A stretch of 64,000 nt of DNA, from sequence record NC_070962.1; one strand, given 5' to 3'. Of this stretch, positions 3,401 through 53,442 are shown in pieces. The number at the start of each line of letters is the position of its first letter. Positions within the stretch are counted from its first letter, which is position 1. The position numbers were made by a program, and so were the translations under genes. The notes beneath the pieces were generated by a model. The model was not told the origin of the DNA. It worked only from the letters and a program-made list of their open reading frames with translations, and ran no database searches.

Positions 3401-3885
3401 AAAGCTCTTTAAAAGCATCTCTAGATAGATTTTTTAAAGCTAAGCCTGGAAGTAATCATAAACTAATTGTTCCAGAATTGGGATTAATTTTAGTTAAAGG
3501 TGTGGGTTGGTTAGGAGGAAATCAAAGTCAAATATGGACAAGAAAACCAGGAGGAAAAAACTTTGAATTAGGTAAACTTATTTTTGGTGGTACTGACGAA
3601 GAAGTTAAAAATGAGATATACAAAAAATTAGAACAAAGGGGATTATTGACTGTACCAAAGGCAACACTTAGTCCTACACCACCAGTACCTGGTCAGAGAT
3701 ATGGTAAAAATGGTCAACCAGTATCATTTAACCCACAAATAAATAATACAAACAAAACACAACTGACAGCATCTTTAAGACAAACACCTTCTTATAACAC
3801 AAGAACCCTGGTTTATGTTCAACCAATAGAGACAATTATTGAAAAAGAAAATCAGAATACCGATCCATTAAGTTTCTTGGTATAA
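490..3885 (+). CDS. Large baseplate-hub/tape-measure-like virion protein with a lysozyme-fold (GH73-like) domain and an M15B (VanY-like) peptidase domain
   Basis: Lys-rich coiled N-terminus and hydrophobic Gly-rich helices. Glucosaminidase-like segment INPAFMWGLSGAE..NNPWNYG..TFPSLAEG. M15 motifs INSAYRSYEHQ, GTSAHGWGTALD and DDVHFEY. Baseplate gene context. Confidence 0.7.
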   Translation: MSKVISSKFLPQSSTGSTSIVSVSGKRITALSTDKKKINFEKFVDDVQEKVSKKKTTGGSNLKLINHELIMIKKTLSKEKTEDKKQNDVKRKLREKTGREKRESKLESGLKLGKIGKNIASSLTSNSIFDAIKNFIGNVLLGRFVIFLLENIDKVFEFLKFVGGVTSFIYDLGTKVFGGIVGLIEGAYDINETVKGEIERVGGENAGKEYDKFTGAFNKFINLAIILAASGVPLNLGGGKDPLKRIPKGTLNQAAKSVSTSTKPFAGFSRTPGTFGAGNQRSSIAEYLKRSRAEKLIERRYGNAAAMRYSNAYRNAIDAGRSPSQAVIRAKATLQSSIRKGTIIARPAGYGLRGGTQARGLTGGIMRRGVGRAGSRLQTRILGRSARLGINRVGMRTASMYSRYMNSMLGRIPVLGALLVGVNTYFEDADGDGEPDRKLDKALFKMGGAALGGFLGSFIPIPFLGTMLGLAVGEYVGDLFYTLIRGGGVNAVGDKLKKDIERLINGVELAKNWLLNGVGNIANDNRFPTNIGLFRQEQVEGMLGFKMGAWPALLNPLNFNLFQKLDILRQAFLVDNKKSLPNNKQQTGNNRNSNQSGNRRSVTAQTLGFTPAQVRNLKAITPGAVPTLAQWKAAVKGSIFEPVAEEVYNTCINEGINPAFMWGLSGAEQSHVPSLKNNPWNYGVNSQMTFPSLAEGVKVIARAIRDPNGYYVGEGRRTLAAIIERYTPHNVQGNNTPQHIKNIINIGIETNGDPSTVLLPLNYKPGNQVSPSTSLLPSIVQPAGTIPQSTVQNNGQNGRLKQSQLTRVGQLSSSPTGGPYWYGNGAYLKHEAARWFIKAKQAAQKEGIYFTINSAYRSYEHQQALVGRYAVVAAPGTSAHGWGTALDIEVNGGWTWLKENGPKYGWHWMQIPNDDVHFEYLGPPTIAPQQAQPAAIPLNPNTGMPPNTSNWGTGGVTPAGTRPITNNPTRQSSLKASLDRFFKAKPGSNHKLIVPELGLILVKGVGWLGGNQSQIWTRKPGGKNFELGKLIFGGTDEEVKNEIYKKLEQRGLLTVPKATLSPTPPVPGQRYGKNGQPVSFNPQINNTNKTQLTASLRQTPSYNTRTLVYVQPIETIIEKENQNTDPLSFLV

Positions 3886-3886
3886 A

Positions 3887-5191
3887 ATGGCAGCACAATT
3901 TAAAAATATAAGTAAATTTACAATCTATTCAAACTATAGTGGTGAACTTAGTTTGATGGGATCACGTGCCTTTTCAAATATTATGATCTTTCAAAGTATG
4001 TTTGATGATACTGTGAGAGGATCATTTGTTATGAATGATACTGGGTACAGAGATAGTAAACGTGAAGAAGTGAACATTGATGAAATTGATGGATTTAATC
4101 TTACCTCTGGAGAAAAAGTAGAATTAAAACTTGAGGATACTAAGGGCAATATATTAGACTTTAAAGATGCAAACGAATTTTTAATTGAAGATGTTAAAAG
4201 TTCTGGTTCAACTACAATGTATGAAACATTTAACATTACTTTATGTCAAGATGATTTTGTTCGGAAAGAATTTAATAAACACAAAGTAATTAAGCACTGG
4301 GATGGGTCATATAAGATAAGTGAAATTGTTAATGATGTTCTTAAAAATATTTTACAAACAAAAAAGAATGTTTTTATAGATCCAACAGTAAATAAATTGC
4401 CAATAAATGGTCACTATGATGATGCTTGTGATTTCTGTACTCTTCTTGCATCTAAAGCAGTATCAGAACAGTTTCCTGATTTTTCTGGGTATTTTTTCTT
4501 CGATACTTATGAAGGATATAAGTTTAAATCAATTGACGTTATGTTTTCACAGGAACCAAAGAGAATAATGTTGTATAATGAAACTCAGGGTGCTCCTAAT
4601 GGAAAATATACTAATAAAATATTAGAGTCACACTTCAATCACAATTTAAATGTTATTGACAATATTAGAAGTGGATCTATATCTAAAACTATTCTGAAGA
4701 CATGGGATCCATATACTCATGCTTACACTGAAACAGAATATGATGCGAATGAGTTGTATAAAACAAATAATAATGCTGAAGTCGAAAGACCTAAGGTTGG
4801 AACACATTTGAACATTGCTGAAGAATCATCAAATACACTTAATCATGTATGGAACACTGGTACTAAACCAACTGGAACTGGTACTGAGGAGCAAATAAAA
4901 AATTCAAAAGAACCTACTTTCGATATTGAAAATATTGTTAGAAAATCTATCATGAGAACAAAGCAGGCAATGCTTTATAAGGGAACCATAACAATAGCAG
5001 GTGATTTTGGCATTTTTCCTGGAGATGTTATACAATGCGACTTTCCCGAGATTTCATCGAAAGATTTAAAAAAAGTCGTATCGAAGAAAAAATCAGGAAA
5101 ATACTTAGTATTAGATGTAGCACACTTAATTAGTGGAGAACACTGCTATACTAAGCTAAATATCATCAGAGATTCTATTAAGGCAGCATAG
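3887..5191 (+). CDS. Baseplate hub protein (gp27/gpD-like)
   Basis: Size, position just upstream of the gp5-like gene, and C-terminal pattern ITIAGDF..GDVI..SGKYLV..VAH..YTKLNIIRD typical of contractile-tail hub proteins. Confidence 0.65.
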   Translation: MAAQFKNISKFTIYSNYSGELSLMGSRAFSNIMIFQSMFDDTVRGSFVMNDTGYRDSKREEVNIDEIDGFNLTSGEKVELKLEDTKGNILDFKDANEFLIEDVKSSGSTTMYETFNITLCQDDFVRKEFNKHKVIKHWDGSYKISEIVNDVLKNILQTKKNVFIDPTVNKLPINGHYDDACDFCTLLASKAVSEQFPDFSGYFFFDTYEGYKFKSIDVMFSQEPKRIMLYNETQGAPNGKYTNKILESHFNHNLNVIDNIRSGSISKTILKTWDPYTHAYTETEYDANELYKTNNNAEVERPKVGTHLNIAEESSNTLNHVWNTGTKPTGTGTEEQIKNSKEPTFDIENIVRKSIMRTKQAMLYKGTITIAGDFGIFPGDVIQCDFPEISSKDLKKVVSKKKSGKYLVLDVAHLISGEHCYTKLNIIRDSIKAA

Positions 5192-5195
5192 CAAA

Positions 5196-5423
5196 ATGGA
5201 AAGTATCGAACAACATATTGAGAAGGATAAGGAGATCCTAGAAAATCCCACCATCTCACCACAACAACGTCGTCACATTGAATCCGAACTAGAAGAACTG
5301 GAAGCATATGCAGAAAATCACAAAGCAGACATTGAAGCAGGTGATCATCATGATCCAACTCCATTAGAGATGTATTGTGATGCAAATCCAGAAGCAGATG
5401 AATGCAGGATTTACGAGGATTGA
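5196..5423 (+). CDS. cp12: CP12 Calvin-cycle inhibitor (cyanophage type)
   Basis: C-terminal HDPTPLEMYCDANPEADECRIYED is the CP12 signature with its Cys pair. 75 aa, acidic. Confidence 0.92.
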   Translation: MESIEQHIEKDKEILENPTISPQQRRHIESELEELEAYAENHKADIEAGDHHDPTPLEMYCDANPEADECRIYED

Positions 5424-5430
5424 GTAAAAA

Positions 5431-8190
5431 ATGGTAATGAAGGGGATAGGACCAACATATAATAGTCCTGGTGTCGAAAAAAATATTATGTATTGGTGGC
5501 TTGGTCAAGTCACTGATGAATCACACTGGAAACCTAATGAGGTAGCAGAAAACGTCAACCGAGATGATCATCCTGGTTGGGGAAGAAGGTATCGTGTTAG
5601 AATTTTTAGTAGAGATGCCAGTGTCAAAGTTGTTCCTGACAGTGAATTAATTACTGCCCCAGTAGTTGTACCAGTTACTTCAGGCACAGGTCATGAAGGA
5701 TATGGTGAGTCTGTTTGTTTAGCACAAGGTTCTTTTGTCGTTGGATTCTATCTCGATGGTGTCCAAGGAAAAGAACCTATTATTCTTGGTGCTATACCAA
5801 ATAATTCCCAAACTAGATTATTTGGTGGTGATCCTCAGGAAGGATTTGTTCCTAGAACTGGATACAAAGGACTTACTGGGGATAAAAAAGTTGCTACGAA
5901 AAATATATACATTGCTCCTGGATCGCATCCTAACAAAGAAGATGCTAATACAAGTCCAAATACTAAAAATGTTTCGGGAGAAGATAAACGAGATGATGGT
6001 AAGGATAAATCTCCCAGAAAAAAGAATATCGAGTGTGAAGGTGGTGATGGTCCAGTAAAAGGAATTCAAGGGCACATACAACGTGCTCTTGCAATGATTC
6101 AAAGAATACAAAAAGCAACTACTAGTTTTCTTGGTGCTGCTTCTAATATAGTTTCAAATATAGAAAATATTGTCAACTCAGTATCAACTGCTGTAGCATC
6201 ATTATTTAAATTAATTATCGGCAAGATGAGAGGATATGTCCTCAGAAAAATTAATGCTGGTATCAAAGACTTGGGTCAGATGTTACCTCCAAGTTTAAGA
6301 CAAGTTTTTGCTACAGGATCTGGTGAAGCAACTGATACTCTTGCCTGTGTGTTCTCCAAAATTATGGGAACCCTGTTTGAGATGGCAAAGGGTCTTCTAA
6401 ACGACATTATCAACAACTATGTTATGGCACCAATGTGTGCTGCAGAAAAAATGGTTGGTGATATGGTTGGAAATATATTAGGAGAAGTTACTGGAGCAAT
6501 TAGTGGTGCTCTTGGTGCTATTAAGGGTCTTCTCGGTGCAGTTGGAGATATTGCTGGTGGAATCTTCTCAGTTCTTGGATTAGTTCAGGGTCTTTTAAAT
6601 TTCCTAAAATGTGACTCTACACCTAATTGTAAATATGTTGATGAGTGGAGTTTTTGGGATGGAAGTAGTGAAGCACAAGTAGTTACAGAGGCTATTGATA
6701 AATTTGTAGAAGATGCTGCAAATAATATACCTGGAACAATTCCTCCATGTAATACTGATCAACTACCATGCGGACCACCATCAATTCAGTTCACAGGTGG
6801 TGGTGGAACAGGTTTAGCAGCAAATCCAATCATTAGTATGACTGGAAAAATGATGGGTCTCGACTTTAGTTCTTTTGGTGGTGGTTATTCAAGTTCACCA
6901 GGAATTTCTATAGTTGATCCATGTATTGGTGGTGGAAGTGCAGTAAAACTGCTTACAACACTTGATGGTATAACTTCATCCGAATCTTGGAAACAAGGTG
7001 ATAATGTTCAAGTGACTTCTGCTGTGGTTACTCATCCAGGAGCAGGATATACTGGATCTCCTAATGGAAATACTAATATTAGTAATAAGGACCAAACAAT
7101 TGTAAATGATGATAATGGTACAAAAGTACATGATCCTGGTAAACCAATTCGTATACCAGTGATTCCTTACGAACCAGATAATGTGCCAAGAGTTTATCTT
7201 CCATCTGGTCAAAATGTTCAAATCTTTGATGATGATGGAAATGTCATTCAGGAAGTTACTGGACAAGGATCAGTAGTTCCAATAAGTCTTCCTAATGGTG
7301 GTAACTTTACAACACCAACACCTCCAAATTATGATGGACCTGGTGGTGGAAGATTTGATTTTACAGGTACACCACCAGAAAATCCACTTACTAATGTTCA
7401 TTATACAAATAATACACCTGGAGTAGGAAACTGGAATGGATTTGTAAATGATCCAGTAAGAGTAAATGATAAGGCAGTATTTGATGGAAACACTTGGAGA
7501 ATTATTACTGGTCAAACTGATACAAGACCTAAATCTGGTGGTGAAAGTGTTGATATTATACTAGATGGAGTGTATATTGATAATCCTGGTGTAAATTATG
7601 AGCAAGGTGATGAGATTATAATGGAACCAAGTTATGGTGGTAAACTTTGCCCTGTGTTTAATGACATTGGTCAACTGATTGATGTTGTTATATGCGAACC
7701 AGGTGGATTATTTGATGATTATCCAAAAATCTATATAAGATCTCAAACAGGTATCAACGCAAATATTTTACCGATCTTTAGAGTTAGACGTGAGGATGAG
7801 GATCCTGATGCTAATGCAAGAAGGATGTCTGGTGATAGAATTATCACTGTTGATGATTGTATTGGTAGACTTGTAGTTGGGTATGTTAATGGACAACCAT
7901 ATTATGGTCCATGGCATTATCATAATGGAAGAAAGATGATTGGTAAAAATCATACTCAACGTAAACATCCATACATTTATGATACACCAGAAGAAAGTTT
8001 AAAGGATCAGTATTATGTGAGAAGACCGAATTATAGAACACAAACATCACTTACTGTTGAAGTTGATGAATCACCTGATGAAGTGTCATCCCCAACACCT
8101 ACACCTAGACCATCTCCAACACCTATACCTACACCATCTCCAACACCTAGACCATCTCCACCTCCATCATCTGGATCTTCGGGATATTAA
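5431..8190 (+). CDS. gp5-like baseplate hub/spike protein (N-terminal OB-fold)
   Basis: N-terminal WWLGQV...GRRYRVRIF...GSFVVGFYLDG..GKEPIILG matches the gp5 OB-fold. C-terminal Pro-Thr repeat. No T4 lysozyme domain recognised. Confidence 0.8.
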   Translation: MVMKGIGPTYNSPGVEKNIMYWWLGQVTDESHWKPNEVAENVNRDDHPGWGRRYRVRIFSRDASVKVVPDSELITAPVVVPVTSGTGHEGYGESVCLAQGSFVVGFYLDGVQGKEPIILGAIPNNSQTRLFGGDPQEGFVPRTGYKGLTGDKKVATKNIYIAPGSHPNKEDANTSPNTKNVSGEDKRDDGKDKSPRKKNIECEGGDGPVKGIQGHIQRALAMIQRIQKATTSFLGAASNIVSNIENIVNSVSTAVASLFKLIIGKMRGYVLRKINAGIKDLGQMLPPSLRQVFATGSGEATDTLACVFSKIMGTLFEMAKGLLNDIINNYVMAPMCAAEKMVGDMVGNILGEVTGAISGALGAIKGLLGAVGDIAGGIFSVLGLVQGLLNFLKCDSTPNCKYVDEWSFWDGSSEAQVVTEAIDKFVEDAANNIPGTIPPCNTDQLPCGPPSIQFTGGGGTGLAANPIISMTGKMMGLDFSSFGGGYSSSPGISIVDPCIGGGSAVKLLTTLDGITSSESWKQGDNVQVTSAVVTHPGAGYTGSPNGNTNISNKDQTIVNDDNGTKVHDPGKPIRIPVIPYEPDNVPRVYLPSGQNVQIFDDDGNVIQEVTGQGSVVPISLPNGGNFTTPTPPNYDGPGGGRFDFTGTPPENPLTNVHYTNNTPGVGNWNGFVNDPVRVNDKAVFDGNTWRIITGQTDTRPKSGGESVDIILDGVYIDNPGVNYEQGDEIIMEPSYGGKLCPVFNDIGQLIDVVICEPGGLFDDYPKIYIRSQTGINANILPIFRVRREDEDPDANARRMSGDRIITVDDCIGRLVVGYVNGQPYYGPWHYHNGRKMIGKNHTQRKHPYIYDTPEESLKDQYYVRRPNYRTQTSLTVEVDESPDEVSSPTPTPRPSPTPIPTPSPTPRPSPPPSSGSSGY

Positions 8191-8216
8191 TCTAAATACA
8201 ATAAAAGTTTATAACA

Positions 8217-8801
8217 ATGACATCTGAGTTTGAACACTTACAAGGTACAAAAAGTCATCCAGAGGGTGAACTTTTACTTGGAACAATGTGTGCCGACAAT
8301 GTGATAACTGGTATTGGTATGCAAGCAAGACATAGTTTGCATTATGTACACTTAGAAAATAGTGGACATAGAGAAGGGTGGACTTTAATGAGAAACCCTG
8401 GTGTTTTTGAGATTAAATGTGGAGATAGTGTTAATCCAGAAAGTATTGGATTAGATATTGAATGCCTTAATGGTGATATATGCTTGACAGCACCGAACGG
8501 ACGTATTAGACTGTCTGCGTTGGATATTGATATTATGGCAAATGGTCCAGATACTGGTAGAGGTCATATAAAAATAGAGGCAAATCAAGACATTAAATGT
8601 AAGGCTGAAGGTAGTTTTGATGTAAAGGCAGAGACTGGTTTTAGAATATATACTCCAAATGTTGGAAATGTTATTGCCAACACAGAACTATTTCTTGTTT
8701 CCAACTTTATTAAAGGATTATCTTGTGCCTCAGCAAGTCTTGCTGGTAAAACAGATCCTATTAATGTCTTACAATTTACAACAAAATCTAGTTACGTTTA
8801 A
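8217..8801 (+). CDS. gp5 C-terminal-like beta-helix/spike protein
   Basis: Repeating beta pattern (IKIEANQDIKCKAEGSFDVKAETG), directly after the gp5-like gene, preceded by TAAATA at 8193-8198. Confidence 0.55.
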   Translation: MTSEFEHLQGTKSHPEGELLLGTMCADNVITGIGMQARHSLHYVHLENSGHREGWTLMRNPGVFEIKCGDSVNPESIGLDIECLNGDICLTAPNGRIRLSALDIDIMANGPDTGRGHIKIEANQDIKCKAEGSFDVKAETGFRIYTPNVGNVIANTELFLVSNFIKGLSCASASLAGKTDPINVLQFTTKSSYV

Positions 8802-45852: not shown

Positions 45853-46521
45853 ATGTCACATTTTCATCTTTATTCTGATCCACCTGAAGGAAACGTAGAG
45901 TATTTGATTCCAATGTTCTCTACTCCTCTTTTACATCTTAAAGTAGTAAATTGGGAAGAAAAAAAGGCAGAACTTCTCAAAATGTATGAAAATAGAAAAC
46001 AAGATCGATCCAGATTTAAAGTTGCAACTGGTAGTGAATTAAGTCTAGATGTTGAAACAGACTATCATCATAATCATGACACTGGAGAAACTTATGATGA
46101 AGACATCATGGATATTTTTCAGGAAGAACTAGAAACTCTTGCTGATACCTTCGAGTGTAGTGTTGATGTTTGTACCTCATGGTTTGAGAAAGCATCAAAA
46201 AGTAAGTTTCATCAGGTTCATAATCACGGATCACAAGGATTTAGTGCTGTATGTTTTGTTCAATTCGATGAAAAACATCACACACCAACAATTTTCCTTA
46301 ATCCAAATTTAGCAGATGTTGAAGTTTGTAATGTGATTCCACCAGGAATTAGAGAGGGATCACTTATCTTCTTCCCATCATATGTTTTACATTATACCGC
46401 ACCAAATGTAAGTGATGTTGATAGAATTATTCTATCATTTAATATCAATGCCGAGTATGAATCATTTACATTTGAGGAAGAAAGTCAGTTTGATTCCGAA
46501 TATGTAAACAACGATGTCTAA
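45853..46521 (+). CDS. Putative 2OG-Fe(II) oxygenase (HxH type)
   Basis: FHQVHNHG...LIFFPSYVLH..RIILSFN. Confidence 0.8.
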   Translation: MSHFHLYSDPPEGNVEYLIPMFSTPLLHLKVVNWEEKKAELLKMYENRKQDRSRFKVATGSELSLDVETDYHHNHDTGETYDEDIMDIFQEELETLADTFECSVDVCTSWFEKASKSKFHQVHNHGSQGFSAVCFVQFDEKHHTPTIFLNPNLADVEVCNVIPPGIREGSLIFFPSYVLHYTAPNVSDVDRIILSFNINAEYESFTFEEESQFDSEYVNNDV

Positions 46522-47077
46522 ATCATTTGTTCTTCGCAATTTCTTATTCGATCATGATGTAAAGCAATTAAATCAATGGACTCTCGATAATTGTCATCGA
46601 AAGATCTTTGAGGATGCTTGCATGGATCCTGACAATCCTGGAACAAGATTTACAACTCGGTTTCCAAATGAATCAGTTGCTCCTGATATAAATTATCCCA
46701 AATCTGCATTTGCAGTCAAGCAAAGAATTGTAGATTACTTTCATTTGAGACGATATAAAAATCCACCATCATACAGTCATGGCATTGTTAATGGTATAGG
46801 ATATGCTGGTGGAAGAATAGAAAATCATATTGATCCCACATACTATCCAAATACTAAAACTGTTCACTTCAATGCCATCACGCAGCAGGCATCTAGGGGT
46901 GGACATACTGTCATTGGTGGTGTAGAATATAATGATCTCAATCCTACAGATCTTCTAATTTACCAGGTATCTGAAATTCATCATGAAGTTACACCAACAG
47001 AAGGTAATATACCAAGAATACTGTGGGTGTTTGGTTTTTGTTTAGATGACATAAAAATAAAGGAGTTATTCTTATGA
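46514..47077 (+). CDS. Putative 2OG-Fe(II) oxygenase
   Basis: IENHID...GG...HHEVTP...RILWVFG. Confidence 0.78.
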   Translation: MSKSFVLRNFLFDHDVKQLNQWTLDNCHRKIFEDACMDPDNPGTRFTTRFPNESVAPDINYPKSAFAVKQRIVDYFHLRRYKNPPSYSHGIVNGIGYAGGRIENHIDPTYYPNTKTVHFNAITQQASRGGHTVIGGVEYNDLNPTDLLIYQVSEIHHEVTPTEGNIPRILWVFGFCLDDIKIKELFL

Positions 47078-47805
47078 TAGACCTGAGTAAAGATCCAACA
47101 TTGTTTGAGACTAATGATTTCTCAAACATGAATATCATTGAGTTTGTTGATGGTGATAGGGTATCTAATCTTTATTGGATGGATAATTTCTATAAAAGAC
47201 CTGATGATGTATATAACTATTTGCTTTCTATTGAACCACCATTATGGAAAGTAGGACCAGACTGGGAACTTGGTAGAGGAACACTCAACACCAAGTATTT
47301 TGAAGATCGTAGACATATGATGGAACATCCTGGCATATGCTCACTGTATGATAAGGTTTCTGATATTTGTGGTCAAGAACCATTGGACGATGAAATTGTT
47401 ACTAATTTCACAAGATTTTCCAGAGTAAGAGAGAACCCATACAAAACTCATTACTGGTGGCCTCATCATGATGGAGGATATAATGGTATTTGTTATCTCT
47501 CTAAGAAGGATGAAGTTGGCACAAACTTATATAAACCACTGATCACTGATGATCCTGAGATACTACCTTTGGATGAGAATGGTGGTGTGAGAGATGAACA
47601 TGCTATTCCGTGGACACCTAAAAACCTATGGGAAATTGTGGTGAGATTTAGATCGAAGTTTAATCGATTTGTAATGTTTGAAGGTTCATATTATTATCAC
47701 AGTATGGATCTAACTGGTAAAAATTATTTTGCAGATCATTTTAATGATGCAGAATTTAGAATCAATCAAGTATTTTTCTTCAAAAATCCAAGGGCACCAA
47801 GATAA
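47074..47805 (+). CDS. Putative 2OG-Fe(II) oxygenase-like protein
   Basis: WPHHD..GICYL..GT.LY...FNRFVMF...YHS...RINQVFF. Confidence 0.7.
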   Translation: MIDLSKDPTLFETNDFSNMNIIEFVDGDRVSNLYWMDNFYKRPDDVYNYLLSIEPPLWKVGPDWELGRGTLNTKYFEDRRHMMEHPGICSLYDKVSDICGQEPLDDEIVTNFTRFSRVRENPYKTHYWWPHHDGGYNGICYLSKKDEVGTNLYKPLITDDPEILPLDENGGVRDEHAIPWTPKNLWEIVVRFRSKFNRFVMFEGSYYYHSMDLTGKNYFADHFNDAEFRINQVFFFKNPRAPR

Positions 47806-48467
47806 TGACTGAACATAGATTTAGACCAGAGATAAGTCCAAATGATGATAATTTTGTTGCATATGAAGTTTCTTCAAGGGATCGATTAGATTTATTTGTA
47901 ACACCATTTTATGACTATAAACTGGGATTAAATAATCAAGAAATTGTAGATGAATGTTTTAATCTAAAAGAAAAGTATCCAAATGGAGTTAAAAAATCCA
48001 ATTTTGGTGATGGTTGGCAAAGTCAAGTATATGAATTAGCAACAATTAGAAGAGGAATGATCCCAGCAATTCAAAATCTTGCTAGGAACGTGATTGATCT
48101 CACAAACGATATGCTTGAGGATTGTCATTCTGGTAAATCAGTGAATGATAATGAAATTGGTTGGTGGATTAACATTAACAAAGGGATGGGATATAATGTA
48201 TATCATACACATCCTGGTTGTTCTGTAATTGGACTATATTATCCTATGGTTCCAGAAAATATGGGTGATCAAGAAGGACTTCTTACACTACTGAGATCTG
48301 ATCCTTCAAGTCATAATGAAGCATTTGCTGATATTGAAGGGCATTGTGAGTGGGTTATTAGACCAGAAGTTGGAAGACTTTATCTGATGCCTTCTACTAT
48401 TGCTCATTATGTAACTCCTCATTTTAGTGATCAGGAGAGAATATCCATTGCATTTAATATTGGATAA
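47805..48467 (+). CDS. Putative 2OG-Fe(II) oxygenase (HxH type)
   Basis: YNVYHTHPG...PSTIAHYVTP...RISIAFN. Confidence 0.8.
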   Translation: MTEHRFRPEISPNDDNFVAYEVSSRDRLDLFVTPFYDYKLGLNNQEIVDECFNLKEKYPNGVKKSNFGDGWQSQVYELATIRRGMIPAIQNLARNVIDLTNDMLEDCHSGKSVNDNEIGWWININKGMGYNVYHTHPGCSVIGLYYPMVPENMGDQEGLLTLLRSDPSSHNEAFADIEGHCEWVIRPEVGRLYLMPSTIAHYVTPHFSDQERISIAFNIG

Positions 48468-48470
48468 ATA
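48464..48470 (+). promoter_or_regulatory. Late promoter ATAAATA
   Basis: Directly upstream of the collar-domain genes, marking them as late (structural). Confidence 0.7.
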
Positions 48471-48504
48471 ATACACGTTATCTGTTGTTAGTAATTGGTA
48501 TAAT

Positions 48505-49041
48505 ATGTCTATTTTACAAACGAGTGGTATACAATTTGGTTCTGACAATACCATTCTAAACTCTAAGTATGGTATTATTCCTCAAAATAGTAAAGCAGTA
48601 TTTTATCAAGCAAATGCTCCTACTGGATGGACAAAAGTAACTACACATAATAATAAAGCACTTAGAGTTGTATCTGGAACTGGTGGTGGATATGGTTCTG
48701 GTGGAACTGCTGGTCCTGGTGGACAACCATTCTCGACAATTTTTCCCACCAGTGTTCGTCCAATTAGTGGAACTGTAACTGCTGCTGGTACTGTAAATGC
48801 GACAACATTGACAATTCAACAAATTCCTGGACACACACATAATGCAGGTTCTCAAGTTAATGTCAGTCCTGGATCTCCTGGTATTGGTGGACGTGCTGTA
48901 AATGCTCAAGCACCAGCAACATCACCAACTGGAGGTGGAGGTTCTCATACTCACCCATTTGGTGGAAGTGCATCACCATATAGTGGAACTATTGACATGA
49001 GAGTTCAATATATTGATGTCATCATTTGTAACTTCACTTGA
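48505..49041 (+). CDS. Short tail-collar/needle-type fibre protein
   Basis: FYQANAPTGWTK..HNNKALRVV collar motif, two HTH motifs 35 aa apart, C-terminal RVQYIDVIIC. Confidence 0.75.
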   Translation: MSILQTSGIQFGSDNTILNSKYGIIPQNSKAVFYQANAPTGWTKVTTHNNKALRVVSGTGGGYGSGGTAGPGGQPFSTIFPTSVRPISGTVTAAGTVNATTLTIQQIPGHTHNAGSQVNVSPGSPGIGGRAVNAQAPATSPTGGGGSHTHPFGGSASPYSGTIDMRVQYIDVIICNFT

Positions 49042-49051
49042 GGTATAATGT

Positions 49052-50317
49052 ATGTCAATTTTAAGAGCAGACGGACTTAGATTTGGTAATGGAACTGAAT
49101 TAACAAGTTTTTATGGAATTGTTCCACAATCTTCCACGATGGTGTTTTATCAAGCATCAGCACCAACTGGGTGGACTAAATCTACAACACATGATAATAA
49201 AGCGCTTAGAGTTGTAGATGGAACTGGTGCAGGATCTGGTGGTTTAATTTCCTTCACAGATATATTCAATGATTCTACAGGTGCAGAAGCAGATCTTTCA
49301 GCAACACTTTCAGGTTCTGTAGGTGGTCATACTTTAACGGAAGCAGAGATTCCTGCACATACTCATAACACTGGAAGTAATCCTAATTCATATAGATCTT
49401 CTGCTGGTTCTTCACCATTCAGAACCGATAACAGACAACCACGTGGATATAATATCAGAGCAATAACAAGAACTGTTCAAAACAATAGGGTTATTGTTAA
49501 TTTTAGACAACCAGTTAATGTAAGACAACCTCGTAACTATAGGCAACCAAGAAGACAGAGAGTTCCACTCAGACAGAGACAACCTAGGAACTTTAGGGTT
49601 AGGTATCCTACACGTTCTAGAGCACCATTTAACTTCCGTGCTCCTGTTCCTTTCCGTGTTCCATTAAGATCTAGAGCACCATTTAACTTCCGTGCTGATG
49701 TAGGAAGAAGTAGAAGACCAATTCCTTTCTCTTTCCGTGCATCTATTAGAAATAATGATAGATTCCCAAGAAGAAGAGGTGGAAGACGTAGGAGAAACGA
49801 TAGAGAACCAAGAAGAGCAGATAGAAGACAACCAAGAAACTCTGGTTGGAGACAAAGAAGACAACTTAGACAACCTAGATCTGCTAGACAGAGAAGGTCA
49901 TTCCGTCAACCTCGTAACTTCAGACAACCTAGAGCAGCAAGACAGAGGAGATCATTCAGGGTAAGACAACCAAGAACATTTAGAGTGAGATATTCATTCA
50001 GACAGAGAAATTCTTATCGTGTGAATATTCCGTTCAGAGCAGTAGTTCCACAGAGAAATCCTGCATCTTATAGACAACCAAGATCATATCGTGTACCACA
50101 AAGATACCCACAAACTAGCAGTGTGAGAGTATCGCAGAGAGTTTTAACTCCTGGTGGTACAATCAGAGCAAATAATACTCAAGCACCAGCAACATCACCA
50201 AGTGGTGGTGGTCAATCACATAATCATCCATTTACTGGATCTCCAATATCATGGGTTGCTTCATTGTCACCATTGAGAGTACAATACATCGACGTGATTC
50301 TTTGCAGTTTGGACTGA
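49052..50317 (+). CDS. Tail-collar/needle-type fibre protein with a ~240-aa Arg-rich insertion
   Basis: N- and C-termini are colinear with 48505..49041 (FYQASAPTGWTK; HTH at aa 103-105; HNH at aa 390-392; RVQYIDVILC). The interior is RQPR-type repeats. Confidence 0.75.
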   Translation: MSILRADGLRFGNGTELTSFYGIVPQSSTMVFYQASAPTGWTKSTTHDNKALRVVDGTGAGSGGLISFTDIFNDSTGAEADLSATLSGSVGGHTLTEAEIPAHTHNTGSNPNSYRSSAGSSPFRTDNRQPRGYNIRAITRTVQNNRVIVNFRQPVNVRQPRNYRQPRRQRVPLRQRQPRNFRVRYPTRSRAPFNFRAPVPFRVPLRSRAPFNFRADVGRSRRPIPFSFRASIRNNDRFPRRRGGRRRRNDREPRRADRRQPRNSGWRQRRQLRQPRSARQRRSFRQPRNFRQPRAARQRRSFRVRQPRTFRVRYSFRQRNSYRVNIPFRAVVPQRNPASYRQPRSYRVPQRYPQTSSVRVSQRVLTPGGTIRANNTQAPATSPSGGGQSHNHPFTGSPISWVASLSPLRVQYIDVILCSLD

Positions 50318-50320
50318 TCA

Positions 50321-50334
50321 TGCTATAATAAATA
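50321..50334 (+). promoter_or_regulatory. Overlapping extended -10 (TGcTATAAT) and late (ATAAATA) promoter
   Basis: Sequence TGCTATAATAAATA immediately after the Arg-rich gene and before 50354. Confidence 0.55.
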
Positions 50335-50353
50335 ATACACTGAATTTCATCTT

Positions 50354-50740
50354 ATGACTAAATCATCTGGCAAGTGGTGTCCACTTATTAAAAAAGATTG
50401 TGTTGAACATAAGTGTGCTTGGTACACACATATCGCAGGAGTAGATCCTAACACTGGAAATGCAGTAGATCATTGGTCTTGTGCAGTACAATGGATGCCA
50501 ATGTTAATGATTGAAAATAGTCAACAACAACGTCAAACTGGTTCTGCTGTTGAGTCTTTCCGTAATGAAATGGTGAAAGCAAATGACAGCAATCAGCAAA
50601 TGTTAGATGCTGTTGGTAACATGTATCTTGATATGTGTGAAGCACAAGGTGTTAATGTTTCCGAATATATTGAACAAATCGAAGGCATAGATAATACAGA
50701 AGAAAACTTACTACCAGAGTCCAACGAGGAGCAACAATGA
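50354..50740 (+). CDS. Cys-rich accessory protein of the collar-fibre cassette
   Basis: WCPLIKKDC...KCAW...WSCA (four Cys), followed by a helical and acidic tail. Confidence 0.7.
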   Translation: MTKSSGKWCPLIKKDCVEHKCAWYTHIAGVDPNTGNAVDHWSCAVQWMPMLMIENSQQQRQTGSAVESFRNEMVKANDSNQQMLDAVGNMYLDMCEAQGVNVSEYIEQIEGIDNTEENLLPESNEEQQ

Positions 50741-52074
50741 GAATTTCTATTATTCCAGAAGATAAGAAAATTATCGTAGATGGTAAGACTGTTGATCTTG
50801 AGGATGATGCACCTTGGGATTTTGATGATGAACCTATTCATGCAATTCAGTGGAGAGATGGTAGAGGTGAATTAGAATATGAGGATGTTCCTGGTGAAGA
50901 TCCTTTACCGAATAAGATTTTTGGTGATGATGAATTTGATACTATTGTTCAACCATACTTAGATTATTTTAATAGTTTCCTCACAGTCTATGAGCAAAGA
51001 CAACTTGCTGCTGCATTAGCAGAAGAAGAAAATCTTGCTGCTCAGATTGAAGAATTAAATCTTGATAAACTAGAAAAAGAAGCACAGTTGGTTATCATTG
51101 ATGATCTTCAGAGACAAAATAAAGAACTTCGTGATGAAAGAGAAGAACTGTATAATGAAAAATCTAGACTTGAACAAGCAAAAGTTTTTGATGAACAAAC
51201 TTCTTTGATGGAACTTCAAAGAGAACAGGCAGCAAGAGAATCAGAAAGAGCAGGACTTGAAGCACAAAAAGCAGAAGAATTTTTTGAAAAGAAATCTTTA
51301 GAACTTGCTAAGAAGTATGATGAACTCTTCCATGACTTTGAGAAAGAGAAGGAAGCATTTATTGAAGAGAGGAAGCAGTATCAAGAACTGCTTCAGATGG
51401 AACGTGACAAGATGGAACGTGAACTTGAAGAAAGTGAAAAAGGCATTCTTCTAGAGGATAAAGAAAGAGCACAAAAAGAGGAGATGCTAGAGAAAGTCAG
51501 GTTGCTTGAAGAAGAGCAACTTGAAATTACAAAGGCAGAACTTGAAATGCAAAAAGAAGGTCTTCATGTTCAATGGCAAAATGCTGAATGGGAACTTGAA
51601 GAGATTCGACGTGAAAGAGATAAAATTCGCATGGAGTTTGAGGAAGAGAAAAAAAGATTCGATAAACAAGTTGATCAAGAACTTGATGTTATCATGAGAT
51701 CTCATGAAGATGTTCTTGCTAAGTTAGATAATGAACAGTATTATGATGAACTTGATGATGCTCTAGAGAAAGAATTTGACAAAGCAGAGAAAGAATATAG
51801 AGATAGTCAGAGAGAAAAACTTAAGGCATCTCAGGCAAATACTTTTGCTTCTGAGTTGAGTGATCTTTCTAAAGAGAGTGCCGATAGAGAAGAAATTGAG
51901 AAAGGTCAAAATTATTCTATTGATGACATTCTAACTCTCATGGATGAAATTGATCCTGAGAAATTATACACAACTCTTACATCAGAAGAAAGGAAAGATA
52001 ATGAACTTCCTGTAGATAAAGCAGTTAAATGGTTCTCTGCCCTTAAAGATGTTCTAGATAAAAATAACAACTAA
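50737..52074 (+). CDS. Fibre-assembly-chaperone-like N-terminal domain fused to a long acidic coiled coil
   Basis: N-terminal MRISIIPEDK.I.VDG...IHAIQW.DG.GELEY. From about aa 85 it is a heptad-like Glu-rich helix. Hand count 130 D/E versus 68 K/R. Confidence 0.6.
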   Translation: MRISIIPEDKKIIVDGKTVDLEDDAPWDFDDEPIHAIQWRDGRGELEYEDVPGEDPLPNKIFGDDEFDTIVQPYLDYFNSFLTVYEQRQLAAALAEEENLAAQIEELNLDKLEKEAQLVIIDDLQRQNKELRDEREELYNEKSRLEQAKVFDEQTSLMELQREQAARESERAGLEAQKAEEFFEKKSLELAKKYDELFHDFEKEKEAFIEERKQYQELLQMERDKMERELEESEKGILLEDKERAQKEEMLEKVRLLEEEQLEITKAELEMQKEGLHVQWQNAEWELEEIRRERDKIRMEFEEEKKRFDKQVDQELDVIMRSHEDVLAKLDNEQYYDELDDALEKEFDKAEKEYRDSQREKLKASQANTFASELSDLSKESADREEIEKGQNYSIDDILTLMDEIDPEKLYTTLTSEERKDNELPVDKAVKWFSALKDVLDKNNN

Positions 52075-52080
52075 TATGGT

Positions 52081-53442
52081 ATGAAAGATGAATTGATGAA
52101 GAACAACTATCTGGTTGTTCCTGGTTTTATTGATGCTGATCATGCCAAAAGATTAGAGGATGAGTTTTTTGTAACAGATGCAAAGTTTAATTTTAATGGT
52201 GATGAACAAGCACCAAACTCTGCATCTGTTTGGAATTATCTTCCAGCACTAGAACTTCTCACTAACAAGACATCTCATGTGAGTGAACTTGTTGGTGAAA
52301 CTGTTTTGCCAACGTACACTTATTCCAGAATCTATCGCAATGGAAGTGTTCTTGCAAAACATACAGATCGTCCAGCATGTGAAGTTTCTATGACTCTACA
52401 TTTGGGTGGTGATGTACCTTGGGCAATTTGGATTGAAACACCAGAGGGTGAAAAAAGATGTGTATCTTTGAATCCTGGTGATGCTATGCTATACTTGGGA
52501 TGTGTTGCTCCACATTGGAGAGATAGATTTACTGGTGAACACTATACACAGTTCTTTTTACACTATGTGAGAAGCAGAGGAATGTATGGTGCTGCATTTT
52601 TTGATCAAGAACGTGATGTAATTGAAGACCACGAAAGTTTATTAGAGGAGTATGATGACATGAGAAATAGACTAGAACATTCCAATCCAAGAGCAATTCT
52701 ACCTAAAAAGTATAGAGAAAAACAGCAAGGTAGTATTGACATTGTAAAAGTTGATAACAATGATGAAGGGTTTGTCGATTTTGATAATGTTGTAATTGCT
52801 AATTCAAAGTATGAAAAGTTTCTGAAGAAGAAAGATACACCAGAGATTGTAAATTCCAGTGCCAATAAATTGAGTGTAAAGAAACTGGAAGATTTTATCT
52901 GGCATGGTGAAGAGTTTATTGATCCTGAATTTTGTGATAAACTTCTAGAAGAATATGCACCAACAAATTATTGGGAACCAACACTAACTGGAAGTGGTCA
53001 TGATCCAGATGCAAGACGTTGTGAGATGATTCCTATTTCTGATCAAGGAATTATAGAAGAAAATAATACAGAAGAGAGAAAGGAATTAGATGAATATCTT
53101 TTTAATGTCGTGAAAGATATTATTGAAGATTATCAAAAAATGCACCCTGAGTTTGAACTAGAAGTTCAAGAAGATAGTGGATATGAGTTACTAAAATATG
53201 AAGTTGGTGACTTTTATATTCAGCACAGTGATTCTTTCAAGGAGCAACCTAGAGCATTGACTGTTATTATGTCAATGAATGATGGTTATGAAGGTGGTGA
53301 AGTTGCACTCTTTAATCGTGAGTTAGTATACAAACTTGGTGCTGGTGATATTCTAGTGTTCCCATCAAACTTCATGTATCCACATGAAATTATGCCAGTG
53401 ACTTCTGGAACTAGATATTCTATCATCACCTGGATTGTATGA
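52081..53442 (+). CDS. Tandem two-domain 2OG-Fe(II) oxygenase
   Basis: Domain 1: LAKHTDRPACE..PHWR. Domain 2: YIQHSD...GG...PHEIMPV..RYSIITW. Confidence 0.88.
   Translation: MKDELMKNNYLVVPGFIDADHAKRLEDEFFVTDAKFNFNGDEQAPNSASVWNYLPALELLTNKTSHVSELVGETVLPTYTYSRIYRNGSVLAKHTDRPACEVSMTLHLGGDVPWAIWIETPEGEKRCVSLNPGDAMLYLGCVAPHWRDRFTGEHYTQFFLHYVRSRGMYGAAFFDQERDVIEDHESLLEEYDDMRNRLEHSNPRAILPKKYREKQQGSIDIVKVDNNDEGFVDFDNVVIANSKYEKFLKKKDTPEIVNSSANKLSVKKLEDFIWHGEEFIDPEFCDKLLEEYAPTNYWEPTLTGSGHDPDARRCEMIPISDQGIIEENNTEERKELDEYLFNVVKDIIEDYQKMHPEFELEVQEDSGYELLKYEVGDFYIQHSDSFKEQPRALTVIMSMNDGYEGGEVALFNRELVYKLGAGDILVFPSNFMYPHEIMPVTSGTRYSIITWIV

Follow-up and report, generated by a model that had tools for sequence, protein, structure and literature searches.

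The tips of several phage and phage-related tail fibers have been described at the structural level. In the Escherichia phage T4, histidines contributed by the three chains of gp37 coordinate iron atoms along the tip needle, with seven irons in total (PMC6957217). Two further structures are relevant here: 9qgo, the C-terminal domain of the Photorhabdus virulence cassette (PVC) fiber Pvc13, which its authors describe as homologous to the host-binding domains of phage short tail fibers, and 9nxk, the tip of gp60 of the Pseudomonas phage Pa223, in which residues 124–215 are said to closely resemble the T4 gp37 tip. Here, we analyze a related tip protein, the product of open reading frame (ORF) 245, encoded in a 64,000-nt stretch of sequence record NC_070962.1 (hereafter the window) from the Synechococcus phage S-SCSM1 (MK867354.2), a T4-like cyanomyovirus of the Kyanoviridae with Synechococcus WH7803 as the isolation host. 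Over nt. 48400–50400, the window is 100% identical to the S-SCSM1 record. ORF245 (nt. 49052–50317, + strand, 421 a.a.) is annotated as a "short tail fiber protein", and the authors of the S-SCSM1 genome, using HHpred, placed both ORF245 and its upstream neighbor ORF244 with T4 gp12, gp37, and gp10. Between its two tip motifs, ORF245 carries an arginine-rich and lysine-free insert of ~250 residues, which very likely forms a long, out-and-back antiparallel β-hairpin.

ORF244 (nt. 48505–49041, + strand, 178 a.a., annotated as "tail fiber protein (virion protein)") lies directly upstream and is a short tip paralogue of ORF245. By BLASTP, the two flanks of ORF245 are 52% and 56% identical to ORF244, the N-terminal flank (a.a. 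1–112, nt. 49052–49387) aligning at 52% identity with ORF244 a.a. 1–119. Two His-x-His (HxH) motifs are present in each protein. In ORF245, these are H103-T-H105 (nt. 49358–49366), which presumably binds metal on the threefold axis, and H390-N-H392 (nt. 50219–50227); all four histidines are invariant in 45 aligned family members, and the equivalent H110, H112, H148, and H150 of ORF244 are invariant in 27 short relatives. A profile built from 27 short paralogues matched the trimeric fibers 9qgo_A (E = 8e-11) and 9nxk_A (E = 6e-5), and ORF245 weakly matched the PHROG tail family 5795 (E = 8.5e-5). Using Pfam, including the Phage Tail Collar family (PF07484), ORF245 was without a match at E ≤ 1 and ORF244 was without a relevant match; some relatives carry the source name "microcystin-dependent protein". 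On sequence grounds, we have assigned the flanks of ORF245 to the T4 gp12/gp37-type family of trimeric HxH fiber tips. Given that 9qgo and 9nxk each comprise three chains, ORF245 would, by homology, form a homotrimer with axial metal sites.

Compared to the paralogue, the insert spans a.a. 113–365 (nt. 49388–50146), slightly wider than the a.a. 124–363 on which a preliminary description of the sequence had focused, and replaces ~4 residues of the ORF244 tip loop. The distance from one HxH motif to the next is 284 residues in ORF245 (103–105 to 390–392) versus 35 in ORF244 (110 to 148), close to the ~285 and 35 given in that description. Both the flank homology and the BLASTP alignment to the paralogue place the insert where it had been suggested to lie, namely in the loop that connects the HxH motifs at a gp12/gp37-type tip. 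In the AlphaFold2 (AF2) monomer model of ORF244, the stretch between the HxH motifs has a predicted local distance difference test score (pLDDT) below 50, and the distal position of this loop is therefore not independently supported by the model.

The composition of the insert is extreme. Between a.a. 124 and 363 (nt. 49421–50140), we counted 75 Arg, 5 Asp, 1 Glu, and no Lys (31% Arg, net charge +69), exactly as first reported, and the net charge of the whole protein is +65. The insert is also free of Cys and His. In the other long + strand ORFs of the window, Arg and Lys average 3.7% and 4.1%, respectively, a rate at which 240 residues should contain ~10 Lys. The Arg codons of the insert (54 AGA, 12 CGT, and 9 AGG) are used much as in the remainder of the window, and the commonest, AGA, requires only a single transition to become AAA (Lys). 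Overlapping the Arg-rich region in another frame (nt. 49737–49964, + strand) is a GTG-initiated and very acidic ORF of 75 a.a.; since AGA shifted by one base reads GAA, this ORF is most likely a by-product of the AGA codons.

The insert is also strongly periodic. Arg, Pro, and hydrophobic residues are autocorrelated at lags of 6, 12, and 18 (0.19–0.27), with the hydrophobic residues showing an additional period-2 alternation. At the DNA level, the repeats are degenerate (67–94% identity) and for the most part spaced at multiples of 18 nt, the one exact pair being a 27-nt direct repeat (repeat family D8) at nt. 49616–49642 and nt. 49670–49696 (+ strand), offset by 54 nt or three hexapeptide units; when extended to 32 nt, the identity of this pair is 94%. 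The insert is thus best read as an old array in which copies of a hexapeptide, roughly R-Q-P-R-x-aromatic, have diverged, and growth by internal duplication, as proposed in the preliminary description from the 27-nt repeat (the coordinates of which were correct), is borne out by both the hexapeptide period and the DNA spacings. The motifs RQPRNFRVRY (a.a. 176–185) and RQPRTFRVRY (a.a. 305–314), which had been taken as a sign of a hairpin, are indeed present on both arms, but they are direct repeats and therefore evidence of duplication, not of pairing, for which the evidence is instead mirror symmetry. A collagen-like or polyproline-II triple helix was considered and rejected, given that Gly accounts for only 5 of 240 residues and the periods are 6 and 2, not 3.

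Covariation across the family revealed how the two arms are arranged. Mutual information with average product correction, computed on 71 sequences (effective number ~42), produced an antidiagonal ridge at i + j = 487 (z 4.4–4.6), 489 (4.1–4.2), and 491 (3.3–3.6), which covers i = 124–207 and survives the exclusion of gaps; there was zero signal at even sums over i = 124–219. The antidiagonal signal (0.076) is ~2-fold that of the best parallel diagonal (0.039). A left-handed β-helix, which the period of 6 might otherwise bring to mind and which would call for parallel contacts between successive coils (i to i + 18), was rejected based on this antiparallel covariation and the lack of a match to the Pfam Hexapep family. 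We did note that the ridge (nt. 49403–50158) is asymmetric, with a sharp edge at 487, a tail towards 489–493, and no signal at 485; this could reflect a second, inter-chain antiparallel neighbor with a shifted register in the trimer.

Given that repetitive sequence aligns imperfectly, a test of mirror symmetry that needs no alignment carries particular weight. At i + j = 487, 41 of 138 mirrored positions in ORF245 are identical, compared to 31 in the best of 200 composition-preserving shuffles and 30 in the next-best register. Mirror symmetry at the protein level cannot come about by duplication, and the ORF245 gene contains no DNA inverted repeats; selection must therefore have produced the symmetry, as expected if residues pair across the strands. 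As 487/2 = 243.5, the turn falls at G243-G244 (nt. 49778–49783), inside the oligo-Arg tip PRRRGGRRRRN and at the very apex first predicted by analogy with the paralogue. It separates an outbound arm (a.a. 118–242, nt. 49403–49777), in which the even positions form an Arg/Pro face and the odd positions a hydrophobic face, from a return arm (a.a. 245–369, nt. 49784–50158), in which this parity is reversed. In relatives with other insert lengths, the mirror center mostly lies 2–5 residues N-terminal of the center of the HxH gap. The lengths of the two arms are correlated across the family (r = 0.90), with several separate elongations extending both arms. Consistent with these data, an AF2 monomer model based on a 45-sequence alignment contains strands at a.a. 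140–198 and 291–349 (59 residues each, pLDDT 65–80) and an apex (a.a. 214–277) with a pLDDT below 50. We are confident that the insert forms a long out-and-back antiparallel β-hairpin in which residue i is paired with residue 487 − i.

The same register divides the hairpin into two distinct faces, a split common to the entire family. Arg makes up 46% of face A (even positions on the outbound arm and odd positions on the return arm) versus 12% of face B, Pro 24% versus 0%, and hydrophobic residues 4% versus 44% (Phe/Tyr/Trp/Val/Ile/Leu), with Fisher p = 6e-7 and 6e-11; a further 27% of face B is Gln/Asn. There are 27 mirrored Arg-Arg pairs at i + j = 487 (R124-R363, R128-R359, and onwards to R214-R273, with R240-R247, R241-R246, and R242-R245 at the tip), recurring approximately every six residues. 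Paired Arg are lost or kept jointly across the family, with an odds ratio of 13.8 versus 2.4–7.2 in registers shifted by 6–18 residues, a control that corrects for lineage-wide loss of Arg. Such coupling is also what would be expected of a purely structural arginine zipper, in which guanidinium pairs and Arg-aromatic contacts hold the ribbon together, the needle serves as a spacer, and the receptor is contacted elsewhere or by the tip only. Lys is unable to stack in this manner, which would explain its exclusion too, and conservation is higher along the arms than at the apex, as a scaffold predicts. However, ~200 uncompensated charges per trimer would make for a costly spacer when other fiber shafts manage without them, and the apex is itself oligo-Arg, with GRRRR in the consensus; we regard the zipper as an unlikely account of the insert.

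The direction in which the two faces point bears on two other explanations. If the Arg face were turned inward, six Arg per layer could coordinate sulfate or phosphate on the threefold axis, in an anion-filled counterpart of gp37. Axial coordination of ions by residues from three chains is known in this fiber family (the HxH motifs and the seven gp37 irons), and the regular recurrence of the Arg pairs would suit such layers. However, this arrangement has no precedent, would leave the 44%-hydrophobic face exposed to solvent, and would have to accommodate the Pro that shares the Arg face, making it very improbable. The Arg ladder instead probably faces outward. The second explanation draws on the strict amphipathicity of the hairpin (an aromatic versus an Arg face) and its oligo-Arg tip, which are reminiscent of cationic β-hairpin host-defense peptides; a membrane-active hairpin might bind or perturb the outer membrane and so aid anchoring or penetration. 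The sole Foldseek matches, none of which were significant (all E > 0.1), were to long hairpins of pore-forming proteins and to the phi29 collar-tail assembly. Set against this, arms of ~125 residues correspond to many membrane thicknesses, a trimer core is the simplest explanation for the hydrophobic face, and the insert has no Cys; membrane activity seems improbable to us.

The insert is retained well beyond S-SCSM1. A search of 5.8 billion proteins identified at least 61 full-length relative clusters that carry it (metagenomic, 411–516 a.a., 91–33% identity), with HxH gaps of 275–375 residues (mostly 275–298) and 39–102 Arg. In the comparison of insertion lengths that had been proposed for related phages, the insert is kept and both of its arms lengthen together. 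With only the insert as the query, a phmmer search of 1.84 billion cluster representatives matched six clusters, all of 422–441 a.a. and with the insert at the same site, and among 50,697 phage records the insert was present only in S-SCSM1. As far as sequence similarity can reveal, the insert occurs in the S-SCSM1 clade only and has no detectable relatives beyond this architecture. Homology to protamine-like or other arginine-rich nucleic-acid-binding proteins was rejected, since all six matches to the insert were fiber tips of the same architecture.

Several features indicate that the insert is maintained by purifying selection. In relatives at a synonymous divergence (dS) of 0.43–0.78, the ratio of nonsynonymous to synonymous substitution rates (dN/dS) is 0.22–0.34 in the insert versus 0.27–0.56 in the flanks, i.e., not above that of the flanks, and 17–26 of ~73 conserved Arg are encoded by a different codon. 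There are zero indels among relatives having the 284-residue gap. Conservation peaks near the base of both arms and is lowest at the apex, the most variable and indel-richest region of the family alignment, where the consensus nonetheless retains GRRRR; this pattern also agrees with a hairpin. Since relatives keep the insert under purifying selection, we have excluded three trivial explanations: an assembly artifact, as the gene recurs across many independent assemblies; a recent repeat expansion, as the DNA repeats are degenerate apart from one pair; and neutral low-complexity filler, considering the conserved insert, its dN/dS, the codon turnover, and the lack of indels. A self-splicing intron or other RNA element was also rejected, with no relevant Rfam match at E ≤ 1 and a frame that is open and conserved as protein.

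The preliminary description had named an assembly artifact and a disordered, cleaved insert as the outcomes that would speak against it. As with the first, we found little to suggest the second, the insert being under purifying selection and predicted to be folded except at the apex. A tail that is polycationic and disordered, or a nucleic-acid binder of the protamine type, in either case perhaps removed during maturation, would fit a composition resembling that of arginine-rich nucleic-acid-binding regions and the pLDDT below 50 over a.a. 214–277. It would also fit the BFVD model of ORF245, which differs completely from our AF2 model (TM-score 0.15), and the status of ORF245 in the virion proteome (see below). 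These points are outweighed by the covariation ridge, the mirror symmetry, the faces defined by parity, the zero indels at a dS of ~0.7, a dN/dS as low as that of the folded flanks, and flanks that are themselves fiber-tip domains, and we consider a disordered tail extremely improbable.

Lysine is almost absent from the hairpin across the family. The inserts of relatives contain 0–1 Lys, the three most distant excepted, and Lys makes up 1.7% of the family flanks and is thus tolerated there. Of the alignment cells of relatives at the Arg columns of ORF245, 64% contain Arg, 7.8% Gln, 4.8% Asn, and 4.2% Pro, and just 0.06% (2 of 3,300) contain Lys. Judging from these alignments, Lys is selected against at the Arg columns of the hairpin, which argues, albeit indirectly, for a function specific to the guanidinium group.

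In our view, the best overall explanation is that ORF245 is a gp12/gp37-type tip bearing a polycationic, salt-tolerant adhesin needle, a reading to which we assign a probability of roughly 50%. Four elements of this reading are inferred: how the trimer packs, that the Arg face points outward, what the needle binds, and that it serves in adsorption. The short distal loop of the trimeric tip would be replaced by the ~250-residue hexapeptide-repeat hairpin, with each chain running ~125 residues outward, turning at G243-G244, and returning antiparallel. The Phe/Tyr/Val/Gln faces of the three chains would pack around the threefold axis as the core of the needle, leaving exposed the Arg/Pro/Asn/Ser face with its cross-strand Arg-Arg ladder and, at the tip, the oligo-Arg cluster. 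At ~0.33 nm per residue, the needle would be thin and ~30 nm in length for the ~90 residues per arm supported by covariation, or up to ~40 nm for the full arms. The trimer would have a charge of roughly +200 (about +69 per chain), or ~+5 per nm. By our own reckoning, this would be close in magnitude to the linear charge density of double-stranded DNA, with the sign reversed.

Such a needle could make many short-range, bidentate guanidinium contacts to an anionic polymer (sulfate, carboxylate, or phosphate) on the picocyanobacterial surface. Seawater would screen long-range attraction, and guanidinium contacts and stacking would act at short range. The exclusion of Lys would then be explained because guanidinium contacts would outlast the charge screening of seawater better than Lys contacts. 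The outcome would be a multivalent, reversible, and low-specificity first adsorption. Taken by itself, a role in adhesion to polyanions is a proposal we make tentatively, at slightly less than even odds. According to PMC9602691, the hosts of S-SCSM1 include both Synechococcus and Prochlorococcus, of differing ecotypes; a host range across two genera agrees with an adhesin role and proves nothing.

A number of points weigh against this explanation. Foldseek searches of the PDB and BFVD with both models returned nothing significant aside from the self-match. The AF2 model is of a monomer only, with a mean pLDDT of 57, and is not independent of the mutual information because both draw on the same covariation signal. 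The outward direction of the Arg face is deduced from hydrophobicity alone, and a face with 24% Pro makes a full hydrogen-bond network to an adjoining strand impossible. In the GenBank record, which flags the proteins of the S-SCSM1 virion proteome, ORF244 is flagged and ORF245 is not; this is weak counter-evidence, because trypsin yields only six ORF245 peptides of 7–30 a.a., covering 53 residues. To our knowledge, the lipid A of marine Synechococcus is without phosphate, and the usual anionic target may therefore be absent.

The tip genes lie within a conserved neighborhood. Many contigs of T4-like cyanophages (including loci L033–L083) share a five-gene module (nt. 48505–53442 in S-SCSM1), whether or not the insert is present, in the order tip A, tip B, a Cys-rich protein of ~115–130 a.a. 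(CPLIKKDC...C...C), an acidic protein, and a 2-oxoglutarate (2OG) oxygenase of the PF13640 type. In S-SCSM1, the last three genes are ORF246 (nt. 50354–50740, + strand, 128 a.a., Cys-rich), ORF247 (nt. 50737–52074, + strand, 445 a.a., Glu/Lys-rich, net charge −62), and ORF248 (nt. 52081–53442, + strand, 2OG-FeII_Oxy_3), which is conserved downstream of the tip pair. An ORF246-type gene follows the tip pair in 68 of 68 loci with DNA past the pair, and a functional link to the tips may be supposed from this synteny. The constant linkage of the five genes suggests a unit for fiber maturation or modification. The number of tip genes itself varies: one locus (L084, nt. 4912–7305) has two short tips and an Arg-rich one, and another (L048, nt. 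7001–8627) has three short tips. As some relatives thus hold three tandem paralogues instead of two, the array of tip genes evidently expands and contracts.

Upstream of the fiber pair are four further genes, ORF240–243 (nt. 45853–48467, + strand), two of which match 2OG-FeII_Oxy_5. The annotations of ORF242 (nt. 47074–47805) disagree: the protein is assigned to the 2OG-Fe(II) oxygenase superfamily, but its PHROG match is to family 1644 ("minor coat protein", E = 1e-30), and in Pfam it matches DUF6445 only weakly. This block is kept in the insert clade down to 33% fiber identity, wherever there is sufficient upstream DNA, and the sampled loci lacking the insert instead have other upstream genes (e.g., transaldolase, carbamoyltransferase, and radical SAM) and no ORF240–243 block beside the fiber pair. 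It is conceivable that the insert is mainly a substrate of these neighboring 2OG-Fe(II) oxygenases, through hydroxylation of Pro, Arg, or Asn, and that the modification governs its properties, which would be compatible with the other explanations. In addition to the upstream block, PF13640-type oxygenases follow the module, and both Pro and Asn share the exposed Arg face. However, the loci with the insert form one clade and may represent a single event with conserved synteny, such that the link to ORF240–243 may come from shared ancestry. The downstream oxygenase also adjoins tips without the insert, and T4-like cyanophages carry many 2OG oxygenase genes in any case. We consider this explanation doubtful.

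The acidic ORF247 is a probable coiled coil in which an N-terminal domain of ~70 a.a. and a C-terminal domain are conserved. Neither Pfam nor PHROG yielded a match, and the protein is unflagged in the virion proteome despite 26 detectable tryptic peptides. Proteins of this type are longer in the insert clade (417–493 a.a.) than in phages without the insert (137–352 a.a.), and their length is correlated with that of the insert (rho = 0.91 overall); this correlation is largely phylogenetic, because among phages without the insert ORF247 spans 137–352 a.a. while the gap stays at 33–40 residues. We rejected ORF247 (−62) as a charge-neutralizing partner of ORF245 (+65), as its homologues are equally acidic (−22 to −76) beside neutral tips. 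Within the insert clade, the charge of the fiber (+30 to +87; loci L002–L032 and L084–L089) tracks the acidity of its neighbors at |r| ~0.76 (ORF247, r = −0.77; ORF248, −0.76; ORF246, −0.76; short paralogue, +0.76). Since all four neighbors are correlated equally, the match to ORF247 is a lineage-wide trend and not a specific pairing, and the joint trend suggests an effect of lineage or habitat, such as salinity.

Upstream of ORF244 is a motif, ATAAATAATAC (nt. 48464–48474, + strand), which resembles the T4-type late promoter (TATAAATA) and may function as one. Exact copies occur three times in the window, all on the + strand, the other two being before the baseplate hub gene (nt. 3739–3749) and before ORF246 (nt. 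50328–50338). Allowing up to one mismatch, there are nine matches versus 3.05 expected.

While the tip family is known, an arginine-ladder hairpin on a gp12/gp37-type tip is previously undescribed: our literature search for an arginine-rich tail fiber returned nothing relevant, the S-SCSM1 paper is silent on the region ("arginine" is absent from its main text), and neither source mentions an Arg-rich hairpin. Receptor recognition by marine cyanophages is poorly understood and shapes the host range and mortality of the ocean's main photosynthesizers, and a conserved polycationic needle under strong selection in an isolated phage that crosses the boundary between Synechococcus and Prochlorococcus would represent a concrete and testable adsorption device. 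The hairpin is also a clean natural case of Arg selected over Lys, with two Lys in 3,300 cells in a family that has diverged to 33% identity. Because its mirror symmetry cannot arise by duplication, it should make a useful model for guanidinium pairing, long β-ribbon design, and binding at high ionic strength. A more ambitious view would be of an altogether new architecture, a mirror-symmetric β-ribbon trimer of at least 30 nm with an ordered ladder of guanidinium pairs, matured by the neighboring 2OG oxygenases and the Cys-rich and acidic proteins, and providing a salt-proof grip on polyanions that aids infection of two genera; we offer this as speculation with little claim to being right in full.

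Arg is favored over Lys in several other settings, including oligo-Arg cell-penetrating peptides, cationic β-hairpin host-defense peptides, and protamine-like or Arg-rich nucleic-acid binders. As a functional analogy, these would share with the insert the multivalent binding of anionic polymers by guanidinium groups, and an aromatic face is likewise combined with an Arg face. The insert differs in having no sequence homology to them, in being tens of times longer, disulfide-free, and embedded in a trimeric fiber, and in its strict hexapeptide period. Among fiber tips, the tandem tips of other T4-like cyanophages have the same gene order and flanks 40–55% identical to those of S-SCSM1, but in their tip B the HxH motifs are only 33–40 residues apart and the net charge is close to zero. 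Among solved structures, the flanks are by profile search closest to Pvc13 (9QGO) and Pa223 gp60 (9NXK), which are trimers with two HxH motifs in the aligned region and differ in having a short HxH spacing and no Arg-rich insert. These two were the only matches in our searches, in which direct similarity of the tip to gp37 or gp12 went undetected. The resemblance to T4 gp37 (2XGF) and gp12 is one of design, comprising a trimeric out-and-back tip, axial metal bound by HxH motifs, and receptor contact between the outbound and return segments (PMC6957217). The T4 tip is short, at a few tens of residues, and its needle carries several HxH sites, whereas ORF245 has only two HxH motifs, located at the base, followed by a His-free and Lys-free hairpin of ~250 residues that would be held together by its hydrophobic face and Arg ladder instead of metal ions.

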